A stretch of DNA of 63,809 bases, filler included, from Dicyema japonicum (taxonomy: Eukaryota; Animalia; Dicyemida): NCBI GenBank assembly GCA_011109175.1. It is 6 parts of 6 records of this genome, joined end to end, with 100 filler letters (N's around TTAATTAATTAA, not from the genome) between each part and the next. Parts side by side here need not be neighbours in the genome. Positions count along the whole stretch, not along the records: positions 14,103 to 26,386 come from RDEW01000165.1; 5 more parts are not named here. The stretch is one strand, 5' to 3'. The notes beneath the pieces are model-generated. The model made no database searches, was not told the origin of the DNA, and saw only the letters and a list, made by a program, of their open reading frames with translations. A program made the translations under genes and the position numbers. How positions within the stretch are numbered: the first letter of the stretch is position 1; each line of letters opens with the position of its first letter. Below are positions 15,850 to 25,954 of the stretch, in pieces.

Positions 15850-18010
15850 GTTTTCATTTAGAAGCTTCCCGGAAATCTCTGTGTTACGGGCTATCACCGA
15901 TCAAGTAACGCAGACGGACATCAAGTGGGCGAATCAAGTGGTTAATGTCTCTCGAGAAAGATTCAAAAGGATACCACGTGGTGGATGGCCTATGATCACC
16001 CGGGCTTTTAACGAAAAGTTCCTTACGTCAAAGTCTGTGGCGAACTTGAAGCGTCTGACTAAGATATCGGGAACTAAGTCTAACTTTCCAATGGATCAAG
16101 GAAAGAGTCGCACTGCTGAAATCTCTAATTTTAGAGAATGCTCAAATGAATTTTCCTTCCAGATTAAGGAAGTAAAGTCTATTCCTCGAAATATGAGGAA
16201 GCCGACCCCAAAGTCCCATACCAACTACTCAAAAAAGAGATATTGTCTGGAATAAATGGAGTGATTAGCGAATACATAAAGACTACCATTCCTCTCAATT
16301 TAAATGATATCACCGACGTGATCTATGCCGCACAGTTGACATACCAAGCTCTTACAAAATACTCTTCTAAGAATAACAACTGGAAAGGGGACATGGAAGC
16401 AAAACTGAGTAAACTTAAAGCACAGTACGAACAGACTAATACGCTTATTGACCAAATGGGAATTCGAAGTTCGATGAGGCAACGAGGGATACCCTGAGTG
16501 AATATGGATTTCAAAAGTCAAAGAGAGGAGAACTTGGAAGGATATTTGCTTGCATTGGAGATGAAATAAAAATTGTCGAAAAAAACTACGATTCAGTGAA
16601 GCATGAAGAGAATTCCGTAAGCAAAATTGGTCCTTTGAACTGAACCGGCGACGTTTCTACCGGACTTTGAACGTTGGAAAAACGACTGCAAAGCTAATGT
16701 TTAACGAGAGTGAATTCCTTTCGTATTGGGAGAAAATATGGAGTGAACACGAGAGGGATGGTAGTACAGTGGCGATTAGCAAGAGAGTCACCGGGGCAGA
16801 GGACACATTTGCAGACTTTAACAAAGAAGCAATTCTTGAAGTAATTAAACAACTCCCAAACTGGAGAGCTAGTGGATACGACGGGGGTGTACAACTTCTT
16901 TCTGAAAAAATAACCCCAATTCATGATCGCTTGTGTGATGAACTCGCCAAAATAATACATGGAGAGTATGCACCAACTGAGTGGTTATACACCGGAATCA
17001 CACATCTAACCCCGAAAAAAGATATTTTCCAAGTTCCGGAAGACCTGAGACCAATTTCGTGCGTGCCTAACTTATACAAACTCGCTACGAAATATGTTAA
17101 CAGGAAGATGGGAGATTATATTGAAGCATATAACTTGATTGCTGATAATCAGGTGGGAACTCGACGAATGTGCCAGGGTGCTAAGGAGCAGGCAATAATT
17201 AATCAGTGCATTCACAAGCAATTCGGAAATGATTTGTTTTCTACCTGGATTGATGTGAAAAAAGCGTTCGATTCGGTCGATCACGACTTTCTGTATCAGG
17301 TCCTTGAAAATTCTGAACTCCCCCATTGGATTGTAAATTTCGTGAATAACCTTGTTATGAAATGAAGAATTAAGCTAACCCTGAACCAGCACCTAATCGG
17401 AGAGGTCAAAATGGAAAGGGGTGTACTCCAGGGTGATTCCTTGTCACCCCAAATCTTTTGCACTTGTAATGGACCCCCTCAGTAGAATTCTGAACGCAAA
17501 GTACCCCAAAGGTATTATGGATAATCAAGAGCACGGTTTTATTACATATACAACAAACCACCTACTTATTATAAATGACCTAAAAATATTTTCACAAAAA
17601 GAAGACGTAATGATGATTATAATGAATGATGTAAATATTTTCTTCCGAGCCGCCGGGCTGGAAAAAATGTTGAAAAATTCGCAACTATAGTGTGGCTGAT
17701 TTAGGGTTGCAAGAGAAATCGTTTGATGAGATGGAAGAAGTGCTAGAAGATTCAAGAAGCGAAGTACTGAAGGCACTCTTTGGAGAATAAAAAAAGATCG
17801 ACAATCTTTCGAAGACAAAATTAAACTGGTTCAACATACACTAAGCGCAAAAAAACCGTTTTTTCTAAATATCAAAAATTTGTATGTAAAAGCATAAATG
17901 AAAGTGCATTATCCCTCTACAACTACTACACTGGGCTCGTCAATATTGAGCCACCGGGATTTAAACAGATTGACAAAAACGTGCGGAATATCCTTTTACA
18001 GCATCGAACT
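15850..18010 (+). mobile_element. R4/Dong-clade non-LTR retrotransposon, degenerate RT region
   Basis: LRPISCVPNLYK, NQVGTRRMCQGAKEQAIIN, WIDVKKAFDSVDH, GVLQGDSLSP, TNHLLIINDLKIF. Confidence 0.8.
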
Positions 18011-18609
18011 TTGAGAAATCGACACAAGCTTACATTTATTATTATTATTAACCCAAGATCACCGTCCAAAACCTAGAACTAATTAATCAGGTGACCCCGG
18101 CTTCTCTGAGGAGGGTCCTCATCTTTGCCCGGTGCTGCTCCCTAGTCCCGACACAATTTCTATGAGGGCGCGGTGGTGGAGTTTTAGGGCCTGTGNTGAA
18201 GAAAACATTAGTGAGGATGATGGTACAACTCTGCTAACTCAATTAACCAGATATATGCCAATGTAGAGACACAAGATCGATAATTGAAAGCAACTCATTC
18301 GATCAGACAGCATATATGAATCAATTTATTTCGATAATCCTAAACGATATTCAATACATTTTCCTTTTCAATAAATAGTTCTGATATAAGTAATGCATTC
18401 ATATTCAGGACAATTCTAGCGAACAAATACCCATTGATATTAAATATTCGCAATAATTAGCAGCCATTTAATTTAAGAATGATAGTGAAGAAGGAAATAA
18501 TGAGGGAAGGCACGTGAATTGGCGATCGTAAATCGACGCGACCGATAAGTATTTATACTTGATTGCCGATTCGTGTTCGATTTCTCTTCAGTTTTATATT
18601 TGAAATGTT

Positions 18610-19740
18610 CTCTTGTCAAAAAGAAGTCAGGGGTTGATATTCGCTCGGATTTAAAAGCTATGCAAAAATTGAGAAGAGAGGTAGAAAAGGCAAAAAGAAC
18701 ACTTTCCTCTCAACATCAAGCGACCCTGGAAATAGAGGACCTTTTCCAACAAACTGACTTTTCTGAAGTTCTGTCCAGAGCTCGATTTGAGCAGTTGAAC
18801 AATGAACTATTCAAGAAAACTTTAATTCCGGTCCAGACAGTACTCGATGATGCTGGACTTAAAGCCTCGGATGTCGACGAAGTCATTCTTGTTGGCGGAT
18901 CAACCAGAATTCCTCACATTCAAGCATTGGTCAAGAATTTCTTTAATGGAATGGAACCAGCCCGAGGAGTCAATCCAGACGAGGCAGTCGCATTTGGGGC
19001 TGCAATTCAAGCAGGAGTGCTTTCCGGTGAGGGATCAGACATGGTCCTGCTGGATGTGACTCCCCTTTCACTTGGAATTGAAACTATGGGTGGAGTGATG
19101 CACAAACTAATTCAAAAAAATACTGTCATTCCTACAAAACGTCAAAATACGTTTTCTACAGCCGTGGACAATCAGCCGGGTGTTGATATCCTCGTGTTTC
19201 AGGGAGAGAGAGAACAGACCAAGTTTAATAAGAAGATTGGGAATTTCCACCTTTCTGGAATCCCGCCGCCCCTCGAGGATCCCCACAAATCGAGGTCACT
19301 TTTGAAATTGACGTGAATGGGATTCTCACAGTCAGTGCTGTTGACAAGTCCTCAAAGTCTTCTCAGTCTCTTGTCATTGATTCAAATGCTGACCGTCTTT
19401 CTAAAGAGGAGATTGACAAAATGATCAAGGACGAGGTCGAATTCGCCGAGGAAGATCGTCTCTTCAAGGAAAAAACTGAATCGTTCCAAAGATTCGAGGC
19501 TGCTGCCTATCAGCTCAGCGCACAGTTGAAAGATGATTCAAAATTGGGAGGAAAATTGAGTGCTAAGAAAAAAAAGCTTTGGAAACTGAAGCCTCTAGTG
19601 CTTTGGATTGGCTCAACTCCAATAGAAATGCTTCTTCTGATGAAACCAAAAAACGTCTTTCTGAATTCGAGTCTGTGGTTCATCCTATCACTTCCAAATT
19701 TGCATCCGCTCAACCTAATCCGGCTTCTGAAGAACTTTAG
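18610..19740 (+). pseudogene. HSPA5: 5'-truncated, intronless ER Hsp70 (BiP/GRP78) with two frameshifts; ends in SEEL
   Basis: [76 protein letters not shown]; frameshifts at ~19270 and ~19570; corrected end HPITSKF...PASEEL* is a KDEL-like signal. Confidence 0.85.
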
Positions 19741-19930
19741 TTAGTTTTCTTGATTGTTTAAATATGGCTCTTAATTTGTTTTTTCTTATTTTATTCCACT
19801 TTTGATTTAGTTTTGTTACTATTTTCCAGGACTATATTGATGAAAGGACATGAGATAAGTTTTAAAATCAATTTATTTGTCAATTATTGGTTTTATTGAG
19901 TTGCCACAAATCTGTATAATTTCCAAAGTA

Positions 19931-22900
19931 CAGTAAAGTCTCTCTCGAATCCGCCATTTCTCGAATCCGCCAATTATAACTAATAAATTCTTTTATCCGC
20001 CATTGTCTCTAAGAAAATTTCTCGAATCCGCCAAATTCTCGAATTCGCCAGATTTTTGTTAACGAATCCGCCATGTTTCTCAATTTTAAATAATTTTTTA
20101 AATTAATTTTACAGGTAAATAATTAATTTATTAACACGTATTCATTGTTTATTGTTGTCTTCATGAAACGTAACTGTACACGATTAAAAAACAAACAAAA
20201 AATTGCCATTTTAAAGTTCATTGAATCGAATATTGAATTTCTTTCCATAAAAATTTCAGAAATTTTTTCCGAAAAATATAATGTACCTATTTCTCGTAGA
20301 TCTATTGATGATCTGAGAAATAAGAGGGGAAATGTGTTGAATAACTTAAGATCTGACATTTCTCGTAAAGATTTGGTACTTTTGTCGAAGTGGTCGCAGT
20401 TTTTTTAGGCCTTTTTAAGTGGATATCCTTTCAAAATCACGTATTGGAAAATTCTGTTGTGGACTTATGCGACATAAAATTCCGACAGCTCCCAATAAGT
20501 AAGGAGGATGCAGTGCATTTTCTGCAAAATGTGGATATCCTTTCAAAATCACGTATATGTCCGAAGGGACATCAGATGGAATTAGTCTTGGGACCGAAGC
20601 TCATTTGGAAATGCTCAAGAGTTGGTTGTAGAGTCCAATGTTCTATTAAAAAAGGTATAATTTCTCTCAAATAATTCTAGATACCTGGTTAGAGAATTGT
20701 AGATTGCCATTGAGGATGTCATCGCCTACATATACTTATGGAGTTACGATAGGCATACCTTCAAATGGCTTCACCACGAATACAATTGGGGTGAACATAC
20801 ATATGTCGATTGGGCTATGTTTTTACGTGAAGTCTGTGTGGACGCACTTGTTAACAGATCTGACGGCAAAATTGGTATTATTAATGTTTATTTCAGGTGG
20901 TCCTGGTATGATTGTGGAGGTAGACGAGAGTATGTTTTCCAAACGGAAAAACAACTCTGGAAGAGTTTTACCAAAACAGTGGGTCTTCGGTGGTATTTGT
21001 CGAGCCACCAAACAGTGTTTTCTGCAACCAGTCGCGGATAGGAGCAGAGAAACACTGCTCAGTCTAGTAATTCGATATGTCGAGGTGGGAAGCATTATTT
21101 ATAGTGACTGCTGGAAAGGTTAGCATTATTTGATTAACATTTAGGGTATTCAACTGATCAATTGGTTGAAAACGGCTACACACACGAAACCGTTAACCAT
21201 AAGTAAGGAAATATAATATTTTCAGAAAATTATTTGTGGATCCAACGACGGGAGTGCACACCCAGACAGTAGAACGAATGTGGTGAAGTGCAAAATGCAA
21301 GAATAAAGCTCAAAGAGGAGCTGTAAGACATCATCTGGGATCTTATTTCGCAGGTTTTTTTAGTTAGTTATTTTTTCAGAATTTATGTGGCGAAAACAAA
21401 TACAGAACTATAAGGAATCTTTTGCACAAATTGTAAAAGACATAAATTCCTTCTACAGTCCTGGAATTTGGATGCCGCGTACTAAAAATGACTAAATTGG
21501 TTAAATAAATTTTTAAATAATTTTAATAACCATTTAAATTATTGATAGAGGGTTATAAATTAAATAATCTATTTTTCACTAAAAAAATTAATTTTAATTA
21601 TCTTCTAAAAAAACTGCGACCACTTCGACAAAAGTACCGAATATTTAAAGTTTAGTGAAATCGATAATGATAGATTTCTTGGATTAATTCAATGGATGCT
21701 AAAGGAGCCATTTTGAACGATAAATTATTACTGAGAAAGCCAAAATATTTGCTTCGAAACGAGGATTCAATGATTTTAAAGGAAACAAGGGGTGGCTTGT
21801 TAAATTCAAAAAGAGGAATGGTTTGAAGTTACGAAATATGCATGGAGAATCTGCAACTTTAAATTTTGACCCTAATGTGGTATCAAATTTTATTGAATTA
21901 ATCAAAAATAAAATCGATCTCTAGGTGTCAAAATGTTTATAATGCCGACGAAACTGTTTATTTTACAAAATGATGTTTGTAAAACCTTAAATCGGGTTAT
22001 AAAGTATTAAAAGACAGAGTTTCAGTCATGTTATGTACAAATGCGGATGGTACAGATAAACGAGCACCATTATTAATCAGGATGTTTAAAAATCCTAGAT
22101 GTTTTAAAAGTTTTATATTAAAAAATATGTCACATATTCTAATTCAAAAAGCATGGATGGATAGCCGAATTTTTAATCAATTTCTTTTGAAATGGAAAAT
22201 AGAATTGGGGAAGCATAATAGAAAAATTTTGCTTGTTGTAGATAAATGCCCTGCACATAAGTGAATTTTATAACATTTACATTAGGTTTTGATTGAATTA
22301 AACCAAATTGAAATAATATTTTTACCACCGAATACAACGTCGTTTTGCAACCACTGGACCATGGTATAATTAAATCGTACAAATGCAATTTCAATTCTCT
22401 TAATTTTCCAATATTATTCAGAAAATTGAAGCTGGGATAAATCTTTATATTGCATACAAAAAATTAAACTTGAAAAATGCAATATTATTCACACATTATG
22501 CATGGAACAAGATTGATAGTTCCTTAATATTCGAATGCTTCACACACGCAAAATGGATTCAAAACATTGAAAATATAAATAATGAAAACCCAGTTATTAG
22601 AAATTACGGATATATTCTAGACAAAATAAACATAAGTGATCCATCAGAAGAGAGACTTTATATCGAAATTGACTACAATGAAGATGAAGAACTTGATTTG
22701 ATTGATTCGAGAAATTAGAACAAGAAATTGATAGTGATGAGCCACTTGAACAAAGTCAGAAAAGTGAAACTATTAAGCGTGGCTTTGCTAGCCTTAATAA
22801 ATTAAACGAATTTTATAATTAAAAAGAATTCTTAATGTCGAAATCTTGAGTCTATTGAAAGCTTGGATCTTCAATGATCCGAACTAAAAAAAAAACAAAT

Positions 22901-23242: not shown

Positions 23243-24936
23243 CAGTAAAGTCTCTCATATCCATCAACTCTTTTGATAACCGCCACAAAAATATATTTTA
23301 AATGGAAAAATTCTGATATCCGCCATTTCCATATTCTAATAACCGCCACTTTTTATTTGGTTTTCATTGATTTGTTTAATCAATCCGGAAATTTTTACCT
23401 TAATGGAGCGCTATTGGCTTAAATGATAAGTAAGGCCTTCAAGAAAGTCGAAAAAACTACATAATTTAGATCAGCGGTTCTCAACATTTGGGTTGTGGGG
23501 CCAAATCAATATTTAAATTTCCTTACCGGGGCCGCCATAATTTTTAACAATAATTTTGGCGGCGGCCAGCATTCTCCCTCTCTTACGGATCGCTAAGGAG
23601 TTCGCAATTTTTATCGTCATGTTCTTCGAAAATGACTTTGTCTTTTGGTAAATTCCTTACTTTCTGGAAATAATTTATAGAACCTTTACGTAATAAAGTT
23701 ATATACTGTACCTATTAAGGCATTTAAAACGACATAACAACCTCACAGCAGTATGAAGAATCACTTCTCGATATTCAACATCAACTTGTTACCAAAAAAG
23801 ATTTAAAATATCGATGATTGAGTGCTTATGAGCGTATCCAGTTCACGATATTAACAACTTTTTTAGAAACATAATCCATTTTAATGGATTTGACGATAAG
23901 ATTTTCCTGGTGAATTATGCAATGATGCCAAATTAATGGATATAAATTATTTTCGATAGAACCCCTCTAACAAAAACAACTATATGTTGTTCTGTATCGG
24001 TTATATCTTTGGAACAATCAAGATCCAAGGAATAAAAAACAAATTCTTTTGCAGCACTAATAATAATTTACTTTAACAAATTACGATATAAGCTGATTCT
24101 CGATATCATCTGATATTAATTGTATTTTTCTCGTAACAGTATCATTGCTAAGTGTTAATTTTCTAGCAATGTCTTGTTGTATTGTGCTAGGACAACATTC
24201 ATTGGCAAATATCTGAATTGCCTCCTTGAATATTTCCCCATCAGTATACGGCTTCATATGTGCTCCAATCAAATGGCATATTTTCAACGAAGCCATTGTT
24301 GTATCATTGTTGGTTGCTCCACTTTTGAAATATGACGTTTTTTTAATATATTCTGATTTAAGAAAGTTCAGTTTTCTTTTTCTTGACTCGCCTAAAATAC
24401 TATTAATCAATGAGGTTTTCACATAAATAGGAGTCGAATTTGGAAGAGTGCCGCCGATAATGTCGTTCAATGGTATACGTTTTTAATGTATTTAGCGTCG
24501 CATAGCATATAAGGCACTGTGCTTTTCCTTTACATTCAACTACAAAAAATTTTTCTTCCCAGTCTTTTTGAAATACACGATTTTCTTGAGTGATATTTCG
24601 ATTTCGCTTAATACAACCAGACATACGCTTAATACAACCAGACATAAAGATAAAAAATGGCACGCTAAAATAATTTATTTTAAACTTAAAGTTTGATATA
24701 AGAGTAAATAATTAAATTTTAACATTATAAAAAAAATTAACAAAAAAAGTTAGTTGCTCTCCAGGGGCCGCAAAAAACATCCTGGGGCCGCATTTGAGAA
24801 CCGCTGATTTAGATAATTGGATGATTAAAAATAAATCTTGTTTTGAAATTTTTTTATGGATTCTGTTATCCGCCATTTCTAATAACTGCCACATTTTTAG
24901 AAATCCCATTTTTTGCAGATATGAAAGACTTTACTG
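23243..24936. mobile_element. Tigger-family MITE (~350 bp) interrupted by a hAT element
   Basis: TA|CAGTAAAGTCTCTCATATC...GATATGAAAGACTTTACTG|TA; terminal bases and ATCCGCCA internal motifs shared with the Tigger at 19931-23034. Confidence 0.85.
23472..24806 (-). mobile_element. hAT Buster/Charlie-type element, internally deleted, with a 28-nt intron
   Basis: TIR CAGCGGTTCTCAA; perfect 8-bp TSD ATTTAGAT (23464-71 and 24807-14, nnnTAnnn pattern); BED-like finger AQCLIC...ERHY; intron at 24057-24084. Confidence 0.92.
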
Positions 24937-25182
24937 TAATTATATTTCTATTAAATTTTGAATTGTTTGATTTAATGAAAAATTATTTTTATAGAAAATT
25001 TGCGTTTGACAACTTATTTTAACATTGGATTTTTTTAAAAAGAATTTTTCTGGGATCAAAAAAATTTTTAAAAATGAATTTATTTGATTTTATTAGTTTA
25101 TGATTTATTACCTTAAATATAACATCACCGCCAAAAAAGAAAAACAATTTATTGTCATAGTGATTATAAACCAAATTAATAG

Positions 25183-25954
25183 CAATGACAAATCCAACTT
25201 CAGTTACAAAAGAATTACCGTCTACAGAAATGGCGATCCCTTCTATAAACATAAATTCGTTGTCAATCCAAGACAGATCAGGAACATGGATATACTTTTA
25301 AATCATCTTACAGAACGGATTTTGCCTATCTGGGGATGTGTTCGAAAAATAATGACCCCGATCAACGGTCACAGAGTAAAAAAACTTTCTCAAATTGAAA
25401 ATGGCAAAGTTTATGTTGCAGGAAATATGTCTAAGTTTATTAAAATTGAGTTATAACATATGTCATCGTAATTATAGATACCATATTGAAGACCAAAAAT
25501 CCCAGCCCATCAATCCTGTCAGAATTCAAAAAACTACCAAAAGTAAAGTTGATTTATTCATGACCAGATTCCTAAACAATACCAAACCATAAAAAGTCGA
25601 ATCAACGTACCAGAACAATTTCCAATTTTGATTTAGTAAATTAAACATGAAAATGGAAACAGTATCCGGACACCTTCAAAAGTCATTTTACGCGGAAATT
25701 CACAAAAAAGCCTTGAATTGTGTCTTGATGCAATTAATGAAGAAATAAAAATGAGGACCGGGCTGTCAGAAAGTATATTATTTATGTTATTTCAAGAATT
25801 TATTCTTTGTCAGGAGAGATTAATAAATAATGTGGATAAACTAACTTCAAACAGTCATTATGTGGCCGCAGGCTCAGAAAAAAAATTTATAAGTTGTAAC
25901 TACAGAACTGAGAAGACACAAATAAATTTTTCTACATTCATAGCCAAAACGTGA
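25183..25954 (+). pseudogene. DCDC2: Tandem doublecortin-domain gene (DCDC2-like) with micro-introns and several lesions
   Basis: ITVYRNGDPF...WGCVRKIMTPINGHRVKKL...YVAG...FIKIE|Y; linker SRINV; second DCX ENGN...MRTG...HYVAAG; introns 25450-25477, ~25548-25567, 25773-25796; frameshifts in the second domain; 5' end uncertain. Confidence 0.7.

Follow-up and report, generated by a model that had tools for sequence, protein, structure and literature searches.

Several DNA transposons depend on host splicing for transposase expression: the P element, Ac, Tc3, pogo and Minos all require the removal of at least one intron. Their introns fall within the usual size range, at or above roughly 50 nt; none of these elements is known for introns shorter than 30 nt, a length regarded as too short for the spliceosomes of most animals. 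In the window analyzed here (the whole 63,809-nt stretch of Dicyema japonicum DNA, to which all coordinates refer), positions 20375 to 21638 hold a 1,264-bp Merlin-type element whose coding region appears to be interrupted by much shorter segments. The reading that we favor, with a probability of roughly 80%, is that this element belongs to a young, multicopy family of Merlin DNA transposons in which five U2-type GT-AG micro-introns, each 22 to 26 nt long, divide the transposase gene. Introns in DNA transposon genes, the Merlin superfamily and micro-introns in this type of host are already known; what is new is the presence of five micro-introns in a Merlin gene, together with a contrast in intron size between hosts at one shared intron site.

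Merlin elements, a superfamily of eukaryotic DNA transposons (Feschotte 2004), are defined by a terminal 5'-GG and by terminal inverted repeats (TIRs) of 24 to 462 bp (PMC8101967). A target-site duplication of 8 or 9 bp is also expected of them. The element described here resembles other members of the superfamily in its D,D,E transposase domain (DDE_Tnp_IS1595) and its GG-initiated TIRs, and probably also in an AT-rich, roughly 8-bp target duplication and a zinc-ribbon-like N terminus; it differs in its five introns, whereas Merlin transposases are usually treated as single open reading frames (ORFs), and the 2021 survey of the superfamily never mentions introns (PMC8101967). Bacterial IS1595 and IS1016 share the homologous DDE domain (PF12762), 8-bp target duplications and short TIRs; however, they are prokaryotic, with an uninterrupted transposase gene and no spliceosomal introns. 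D. japonicum and the myxobolid myxozoans are the only animals for which introns shorter than 30 nt have been reported, and it is in these two lineages that the median intron is below 30 nt (PMC13644364), a range into which the 22- to 26-nt introns of the element fit. The ultrashort introns of these animals are likewise GT-AG, about 20 to 30 nt long and dense, with a 5' signal approximating GTA (PMC6736024; PMC13644364), but they have been reported in host genes and not in a mobile element. The D. japonicum genome consists of 49% repeats and averages 6.2 introns per 1,155-bp coding sequence (PMC6736024); the element, with five introns in about 0.9 kb of coding sequence, or approximately one per 180 nt, has the same density.

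In the three forward reading frames, a Merlin-like protein was found to switch frame at five points, with a GT...AG segment at each. All homology tests were conducted exon by exon, and the exon peptides were mapped on a profile of 312 positions built from 42 full-length Merlin homologues; the pieces on either side of a frameshift and of an in-frame TGA were handled apart. The predicted gene model is as follows.

20445 to 20654, plus strand: exon 1, 5' truncated, profile positions 8 to 63, a zinc-ribbon-like N-terminal region with the pattern C-x3-H...C-x4-C; no in-frame ATG.
20655 to 20680, plus strand: intron 1, 26 nt, GT..AG, phase 1; the split codon encodes D.
20681 to 20874, plus strand: exon 2, profile positions 65 to 73 and then 73 to 127 in the next frame, with a 1-nt frameshift after 20709.
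20875 to 20896, plus strand: intron 2, 22 nt, GT..AG, phase 1; the split codon encodes G.
20897 to 21118, plus strand: exon 3, profile positions 129 to 201, the DDE_Tnp_IS1595 core with the first two catalytic Asp residues.
21119 to 21144, plus strand: intron 3, 26 nt, GT..AG, phase 1; the split codon encodes G.
21145 to 21202, plus strand: exon 4, profile positions 204 to 218, ending in the motif ...VNH.
21203 to 21225, plus strand: intron 4, 23 nt, GTAAGG..CAG, phase 2.
21226 to 21353, plus strand: exon 5, profile positions 222 to 238 and 241 to 260, with the catalytic Glu (VERMW) and an in-frame TGA at 21284 to 21286.
21354 to 21379, plus strand: intron 5, 26 nt, GT..AG, phase 1; the split codon encodes E.
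21380 to 21495, plus strand: exon 6, profile positions 262 to 290, with the stop codon TAA at 21493 to 21495.
21504 to 21509, plus strand: AATAAA, past the exon 6 stop.

The exon peptides are colinear on the profile, with one split codon per junction, and these codons fill the profile positions that lie between exons (64, 128, 202, 219 and 261). Splicing of intron 2 would generate a G at position 128, where 93% of homologues have G, and splicing of intron 5 would generate an E at position 261, the commonest residue there (50% of homologues). A variable loop that directly follows junction 3 contains a 2-residue insertion. All GT-AG pairs of 15 to 80 nt that are compatible with the frame were enumerated around each homology break; at each junction, a single pair leaves one codon between the homology anchors, and the alternative pairs either remove conserved residues or, in the case of junction 5, introduce 12 additional nt. 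In-frame stops are present in four of the five segments and the frame is shifted by all of them; therefore, the host spliceosome would have to remove every one for a transposase to be made. The 5' ends read GTA in three cases and GTT in two, and A residues occur upstream of the AG, roughly as in short animal introns (PMC13644364). The 3' signal of D. japonicum introns was reported to be weak in a 2026 paper (PMC13644364); in the element, all five 3' ends are T-rich (...TTYAG). These results support the conclusion that the five segments behave as U2-type spliceosomal micro-introns by every sequence test applied.

Exon 3 by itself matched Pfam family PF12762 (DDE_Tnp_IS1595; E value, 2e-6; 28.3 bits against a cutoff of 27), retrieved 3,849 homologues from a library of 1.84 billion proteins (best E value, 1.8e-30) and matched the 42-homologue profile with an E value of 2.5e-45. 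The catalytic triad is present as D137 (VEVDES), D198 (SDCWK) and E235 (VERMW) in profile numbering. Exon 1 matched the same profile with an E value of 3.8e-12; it had no Pfam match at an E value of 1 or less, the zinc-finger family (Zn_Tnp_IS1595-like) included, and its C-x3-H...C-x4-C pattern is common to two relatives, L001 and L008, which are discussed below. In protein searches, the closest named homologues were from molluscs, arachnids, insects and nematodes; the Merlin transposase of Thelohanellus kitauei is distant, with 36% identity to P0004, the closest relative protein. The element is bounded by the following repeats.

20375 to 20408, plus strand: 5' TIR, 34 bp, beginning GG (GGTAC).
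21605 to 21638, plus strand: 3' TIR, 34 bp.

Within the longer arms (20366 to 20408 and 21605 to 21647), the inner 34 nt are complementary at 34 of 34 positions, and both their length, within the range of 24 to 462 bp, and their terminal GG agree with the definition of the superfamily (PMC8101967). Together, these features support the assignment of the locus as a Merlin/IS1595-type transposase gene within a TIR element. The preliminary description of this locus had named the same type of transposase with intact TIRs and had listed five GT...AG segments, four of them in phase 1, whose removal rejoins Merlin motifs. All of this was borne out: the coordinates and lengths (26, 22, 26, 23 and 26 nt) are those selected by the boundary enumeration at all five junctions, the phases are 1, 1, 1, 2 and 1, and the rejoined motifs are exactly colinear with the 42-protein profile at each junction.

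Other copies of the element were compared as read contigs from four DNA-like runs of one sample and study, dated 2019, over window positions 17700 to 21700; the make-up of these runs, one large and several small libraries, agrees with that of the D. japonicum deposit. Contigs of the Merlin family span 20445 to 21634 with all five introns unchanged, and they differ from the window copy by only 5 substitutions and 2 indels, a divergence of less than 1%, with no difference inside an intron. In all family contigs, an additional T follows 20709 and puts exon 2 back in frame, and a G replaces the T at 21284, which changes the TGA to GGA; at that position of the profile, glycine is the most frequent residue. 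Two synonymous and two missense changes make up the other coding differences. The word depth of the family is about 5 to 30 times that of single-copy flanks. The family is thus young and multicopy, and its majority sequence has neither the frameshift nor the TGA. Given this low divergence and the retention of the introns, the family appears to have been amplified when the gene already had all five introns. Low-depth contigs in two of the runs join 20526 to 21226, skipping 699 nt with 3 nt of microhomology, and represent an internal-deletion derivative of the family. The right breakpoint of this joint falls on the base with which exon 5 begins, a coincidence that is probably fortuitous, and a doubled depth across 21184 to 21585 fits the presence of shorter deletion-derivative copies.

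The copy in the window is itself defective. In addition to the 1-nt frameshift in exon 2 (20709/20710) and the in-frame TGA in exon 5 (21284 to 21286), its 5' region is marked by one further feature.

20419 to 20444, plus strand: 26-nt filler, an exact duplicate of 20531 to 20556, which marks a copy-specific 5' internal deletion.

Family contigs match the window only from 20445 rightward and continue on the left with a further 173 to 203 bases unlike it, and contigs that enter from the TIR side part from the window sequence after 20418. Accordingly, the window copy has lost a 5' internal part, for which the 26-nt duplicate is the filler; the deleted part probably held the start codon. A coding-competent copy should have a start codon and a frame that stays open after splicing; the window copy, with its deletion, frameshift, TGA and lack of an in-frame ATG, has neither. 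It is therefore predicted to be unable to express a transposase, unless the frameshift is an assembly error, and is presumably a dead or nonautonomous passenger. The earlier proposal that expression of the element now depends on a micro-intron spliceosome consequently does not apply to this 5'-deleted, frameshifted and stop-bearing copy.

Several observations weigh against the interpretation that we prefer. RNA runs containing the stretch were sought, and the search returned four runs of one sample, none of which is recorded as RNA. The spliced family protein was not found in protein collections queried with the exon 3 ORF and P0004; compared back to each exon, no match exceeded 68% identity across a whole exon. 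The window copy has no in-frame ATG; an ATG at 20467, at the position where homologues start, is one base out of frame both here and in the family contig, so that an intact ORF depends on 5' sequence beyond that of the window copy. Furthermore, read contigs collapse copies and drop rare variants, and the intact family is for that reason a majority sequence, not one proven copy. Finally, several homopolymer indels separate the window from the reads elsewhere, such as an extra C behind 19265, and some of the apparent lesions of the window copy may thus reflect errors of assembly. The D. japonicum assembly is a scaffolded hybrid of Illumina and PacBio data, with which these indels and the n in the window are compatible. 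In a separate model, an additional 15-nt intron (20499 to 20513) that would rescue the ATG at 20467 was considered and rejected, as it gave no sensible protein.

These points bear most directly on the possibility that the segments are not introns at all, but small insertions in a dead transposase pseudogene, the family having been mobilized by the transposase of another element. The decay of the window copy (frameshift, TGA and 5' deletion), the fact that there was no RNA among the runs found for the stretch, and the out-of-frame position of the expected start ATG even in the family contig would all be compatible with such a history. We regard it as very improbable, however, since all five segments are GT...AG segments of 22 to 26 nt with one colinearity-restoring pair per junction, the split codons at introns 2 and 5 regenerate the consensus G and E, and the exons lie less than 1% from a family majority in which both coding lesions are lacking. 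It is also difficult to reconcile with the independent 43-nt GT-AG intron that the relative L001 carries at the site of segment 4.

We postulate instead that the family is a cut-and-paste DNA transposon resident in the genome of an animal in which nearly every intron is shorter than about 30 nt, and that its transposase gene consists of six exons and five U2-type GT-AG micro-introns. From the sequence features described above, we infer that these micro-introns are actually spliced; their removal by the U2-type spliceosome of the host would give a transposase of about 300 amino acids or more, with a zinc ribbon and a DDE domain. Intact copies would have supplied this transposase recently, because the family has been amplified with its introns in place. 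The window copy would then be one that lost its 5' part, presumably with the start codon, had the gap patched by the 26-nt filler, and was inserted into a pogo-like repeat.

Whether the introns were inherited or gained was addressed by comparing their positions in relatives. Many Merlin homologues of about 290 amino acids are single ORFs. No intron interrupts sites 2, 3 and 4 in genomic DNA from a spider, Trichonephila clavata (L003), and a sea slug, Elysia marginata (L004), where the sequence corresponding to exons 2 to 5 is contiguous in one frame. Two relatives from the same Merlin clade, L001 (Logan SRR26324622) and L008 (Logan SRR14454025), are 64% and 67% identical to the element, respectively, in exon 3 and 88 to 94% identical in exon 5a (94% for L008); in contrast to the element, they have only one or two introns each, of 42 to 46 nt. 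The single intron of L001 (43 nt, GT-AG, positions 987 to 1029, phase 2) is located exactly at site 4, after VNH and two bases, and L001 is continuous at sites 1, 2, 3 and 5. L008 has a 42-nt GT-AG intron (436 to 477, phase 0) 7 nt upstream of site 2 and a 46-nt GT-AG intron (754 to 799, phase 0) 11 nt upstream of site 4. Other members of the Merlin clade to which this element belongs consequently have introns as well, and the uniqueness implied by the preliminary description was an overreading. TIRs were sought in L001 and in a further relative, L002, and none were found, the contigs being too short to show them. In two other relatives, L006 and L007, the sequence stops or degenerates close to site 3 or 4, and no clear second exon follows. 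Some of these relatives are themselves degraded: L008 has a TGA at 376 to 378 in place of a conserved Trp, and L007 has an in-frame TAG at 700 to 702 and loses homology after an HFK motif, where GTCAGT comes next, so that both appear to be pseudogenes.

Since the L001 intron shares both site and phase with intron 4 and, at 43 nt, is about twice its length, the simplest view is that intron 4 was inherited and has shrunk in the element. Introns 1, 2, 3 and 5 were seen only in this element among the relatives compared, and they may be lineage specific or may have been lost elsewhere. The preliminary description had left open whether the introns were gained or shrunk, and had suggested that intron positions be compared with those of other Merlin elements. 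That comparison produced a match at site 4 in L001 and uninterrupted sequence at sites 2 to 4 in the spider and Elysia, and at this low resolution the answer is probably both, with shrinkage at intron 4 and four introns that are absent from L001.

One could also envision that an ancestral Merlin element already carried all five introns and that these merely became shorter in this host, the intronless relatives having lost theirs. The shared site and phase of intron 4 fit this scenario, as do the introns that L008 has near site 2 (7 nt away) and site 4 (11 nt away), a potential junction (AAG|GTGAGC) three codons past site 3 in another relative, L005, and the finding that 18 of 170 ORF-called homologues end near site 3 compared with 0 to 4 near the other junctions. 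Nevertheless, it is unlikely: L001 is uninterrupted at four of the five sites and the spider and Elysia copies at sites 2 to 4, the nearby introns of L008 and L005 differ in phase and position and are therefore different introns, and the bacterial IS1595 relatives have none. The opposite proposal, that most of the five introns were created inside the transposon lineage after it entered an ultrashort-intron host, is somewhat better placed, although we advance it only tentatively and would not count it as probable.

The element lies within another repeat, and its flanks are listed with it.

19940 to 22720 (approximate), plus strand: decayed pogo/Tigger-like element, recognized by PF03184 (DDE_1) at 22028 to 22261, read depth and empty-site joints.
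20367 to 20374, no strand assigned: left flank AAAGATTT, a degenerate copy of the target-site duplication, from the sequence and from pogo-like paralogues without the insertion.
21639 to 21646, no strand assigned: right copy of the target-site duplication, GAATATTT, from the sequence and from empty-site read contigs.

The pogo-like element has a CENP-B-type N terminus and several frameshifts, and its word depth reaches about 88,000, compared with about 40 to 100 in single-copy flanks, which indicates that the copy number of some of its parts is on the order of a thousand or higher. An 18-nt motif (ATTTCTCGAATCCGCCAA-like) occurs 4 to 6 times in its 5' region (19940 to 20080), and these repeats may serve for transposase binding. 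In the read contigs, very-high-depth joints from 20369 to 21639/21640 represent empty sites in pogo-like paralogues and prove that the Merlin copy is an insertion inside this repeat. The flanks AAAGATTT and GAATATTT are identical at six of eight positions, which makes the earlier account of a target-site duplication with two mismatches a fair one for the flanks as they stand. However, the empty site reads TAAA|GAATATTTAAAG, which indicates that the likeliest duplication is the 8-mer GAATATTT, its left copy seeming to lack 3 nt; the flanks would then represent an 8-bp duplication that was shortened by 3 nt on the left side, and they do not form a clean duplication.

One neighboring gene appears to provide independent support, within the window, for micro-introns outside the Merlin element.

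24040 to 24663, minus strand: hAT-derived gene with a Spin-doc zinc finger (PF18658).

On the minus strand, this gene has a 31-nt GT-AG phase 1 segment (24392 to 24422) that contains two stops and joins two ORFs, and a probable 28-nt GT-AG segment at about 24055 to 24082 after the second ORF. A gene with two doublecortin domains (25100 to 25950; PF03607 at 25205 to 25453) has candidate GT-AG segments of 25 to 28 nt between its domains; no consistent exon model could be fitted without homologues, and these segments were not used as evidence. A BiP-like HSP70 fragment (18573 to 19744) comprises the C-terminal 390 or so residues, ends in ...SEEL and has no intron in 1.2 kb; upstream of it there is no N-terminal half, but instead repeats and an n at 18196. 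Relative to the read contigs, this fragment has an extra C behind 19265 and an extra G behind 19564, which look like homopolymer errors of the assembly. A reverse transcriptase of the long interspersed nuclear element (LINE) type (RVT_1) occupies two ORFs at 16667 to 17690, just upstream of a high-copy repeat at 17830 to 18235.

The nature of these neighbors argues against the idea that the DNA derives from a ciliate or other protist host and that the segments are ciliate-type introns or internal eliminated sequences (IESs) instead of animal micro-introns. Introns measure about 25 nt in Paramecium and similar ciliates, and the DNA in question is AT-rich. Merlin relatives also occur in ciliates (PMC8101967). 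However, reading frames in the window use standard stop codons, and the exons and neighboring ORFs of 230 to 250 codons are free of TAA and TAG, which would be unexpected under a ciliate code at 30 to 40% GC; the neighbors are of animal type (pogo DDE_1, RVT_1 LINE, Spin-doc hAT-derived, doublecortin and BiP-like HSP70), and the closest Merlin relatives are from protostome animals. In addition, the boundaries that restore the frame are GT/AG and not TA/TA, and TA-bounded excision of the segments, tried as an IES model, did not restore the reading frames. A protist origin is accordingly the least probable of the alternatives that we considered, and we think the chance of it slight.

Animal introns shorter than 30 nt have been accepted only recently and have been described for host genes only. 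Our understanding of the mechanisms of Merlin transposition and of splicing is unchanged by this case; its value lies in a young, multicopy family that offers natural replicates for micro-intron recognition, gain, loss and mutation rates. If most of the introns were indeed created within the element, then the element would have acquired the intron density and size of its host, micro-introns would still be arising in a genome whose introns have been assumed only to become shorter, and the near-coincident sites in L008 and L005 would reflect recurrent intron gain at preferred spots in Merlin genes. Under the same supposition, the element would be "host-locked" after horizontal transfer, for example, to a cephalopod host, where an ordinary spliceosome would fail on introns of 22 to 26 nt. 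The orthologous site 4, with 23 nt here and 43 nt in L001, suggests that the length of an intron in a mobile gene follows the regime of its host. A gene of this kind should be unspliceable elsewhere, which suggests a simple barrier to horizontal transfer.

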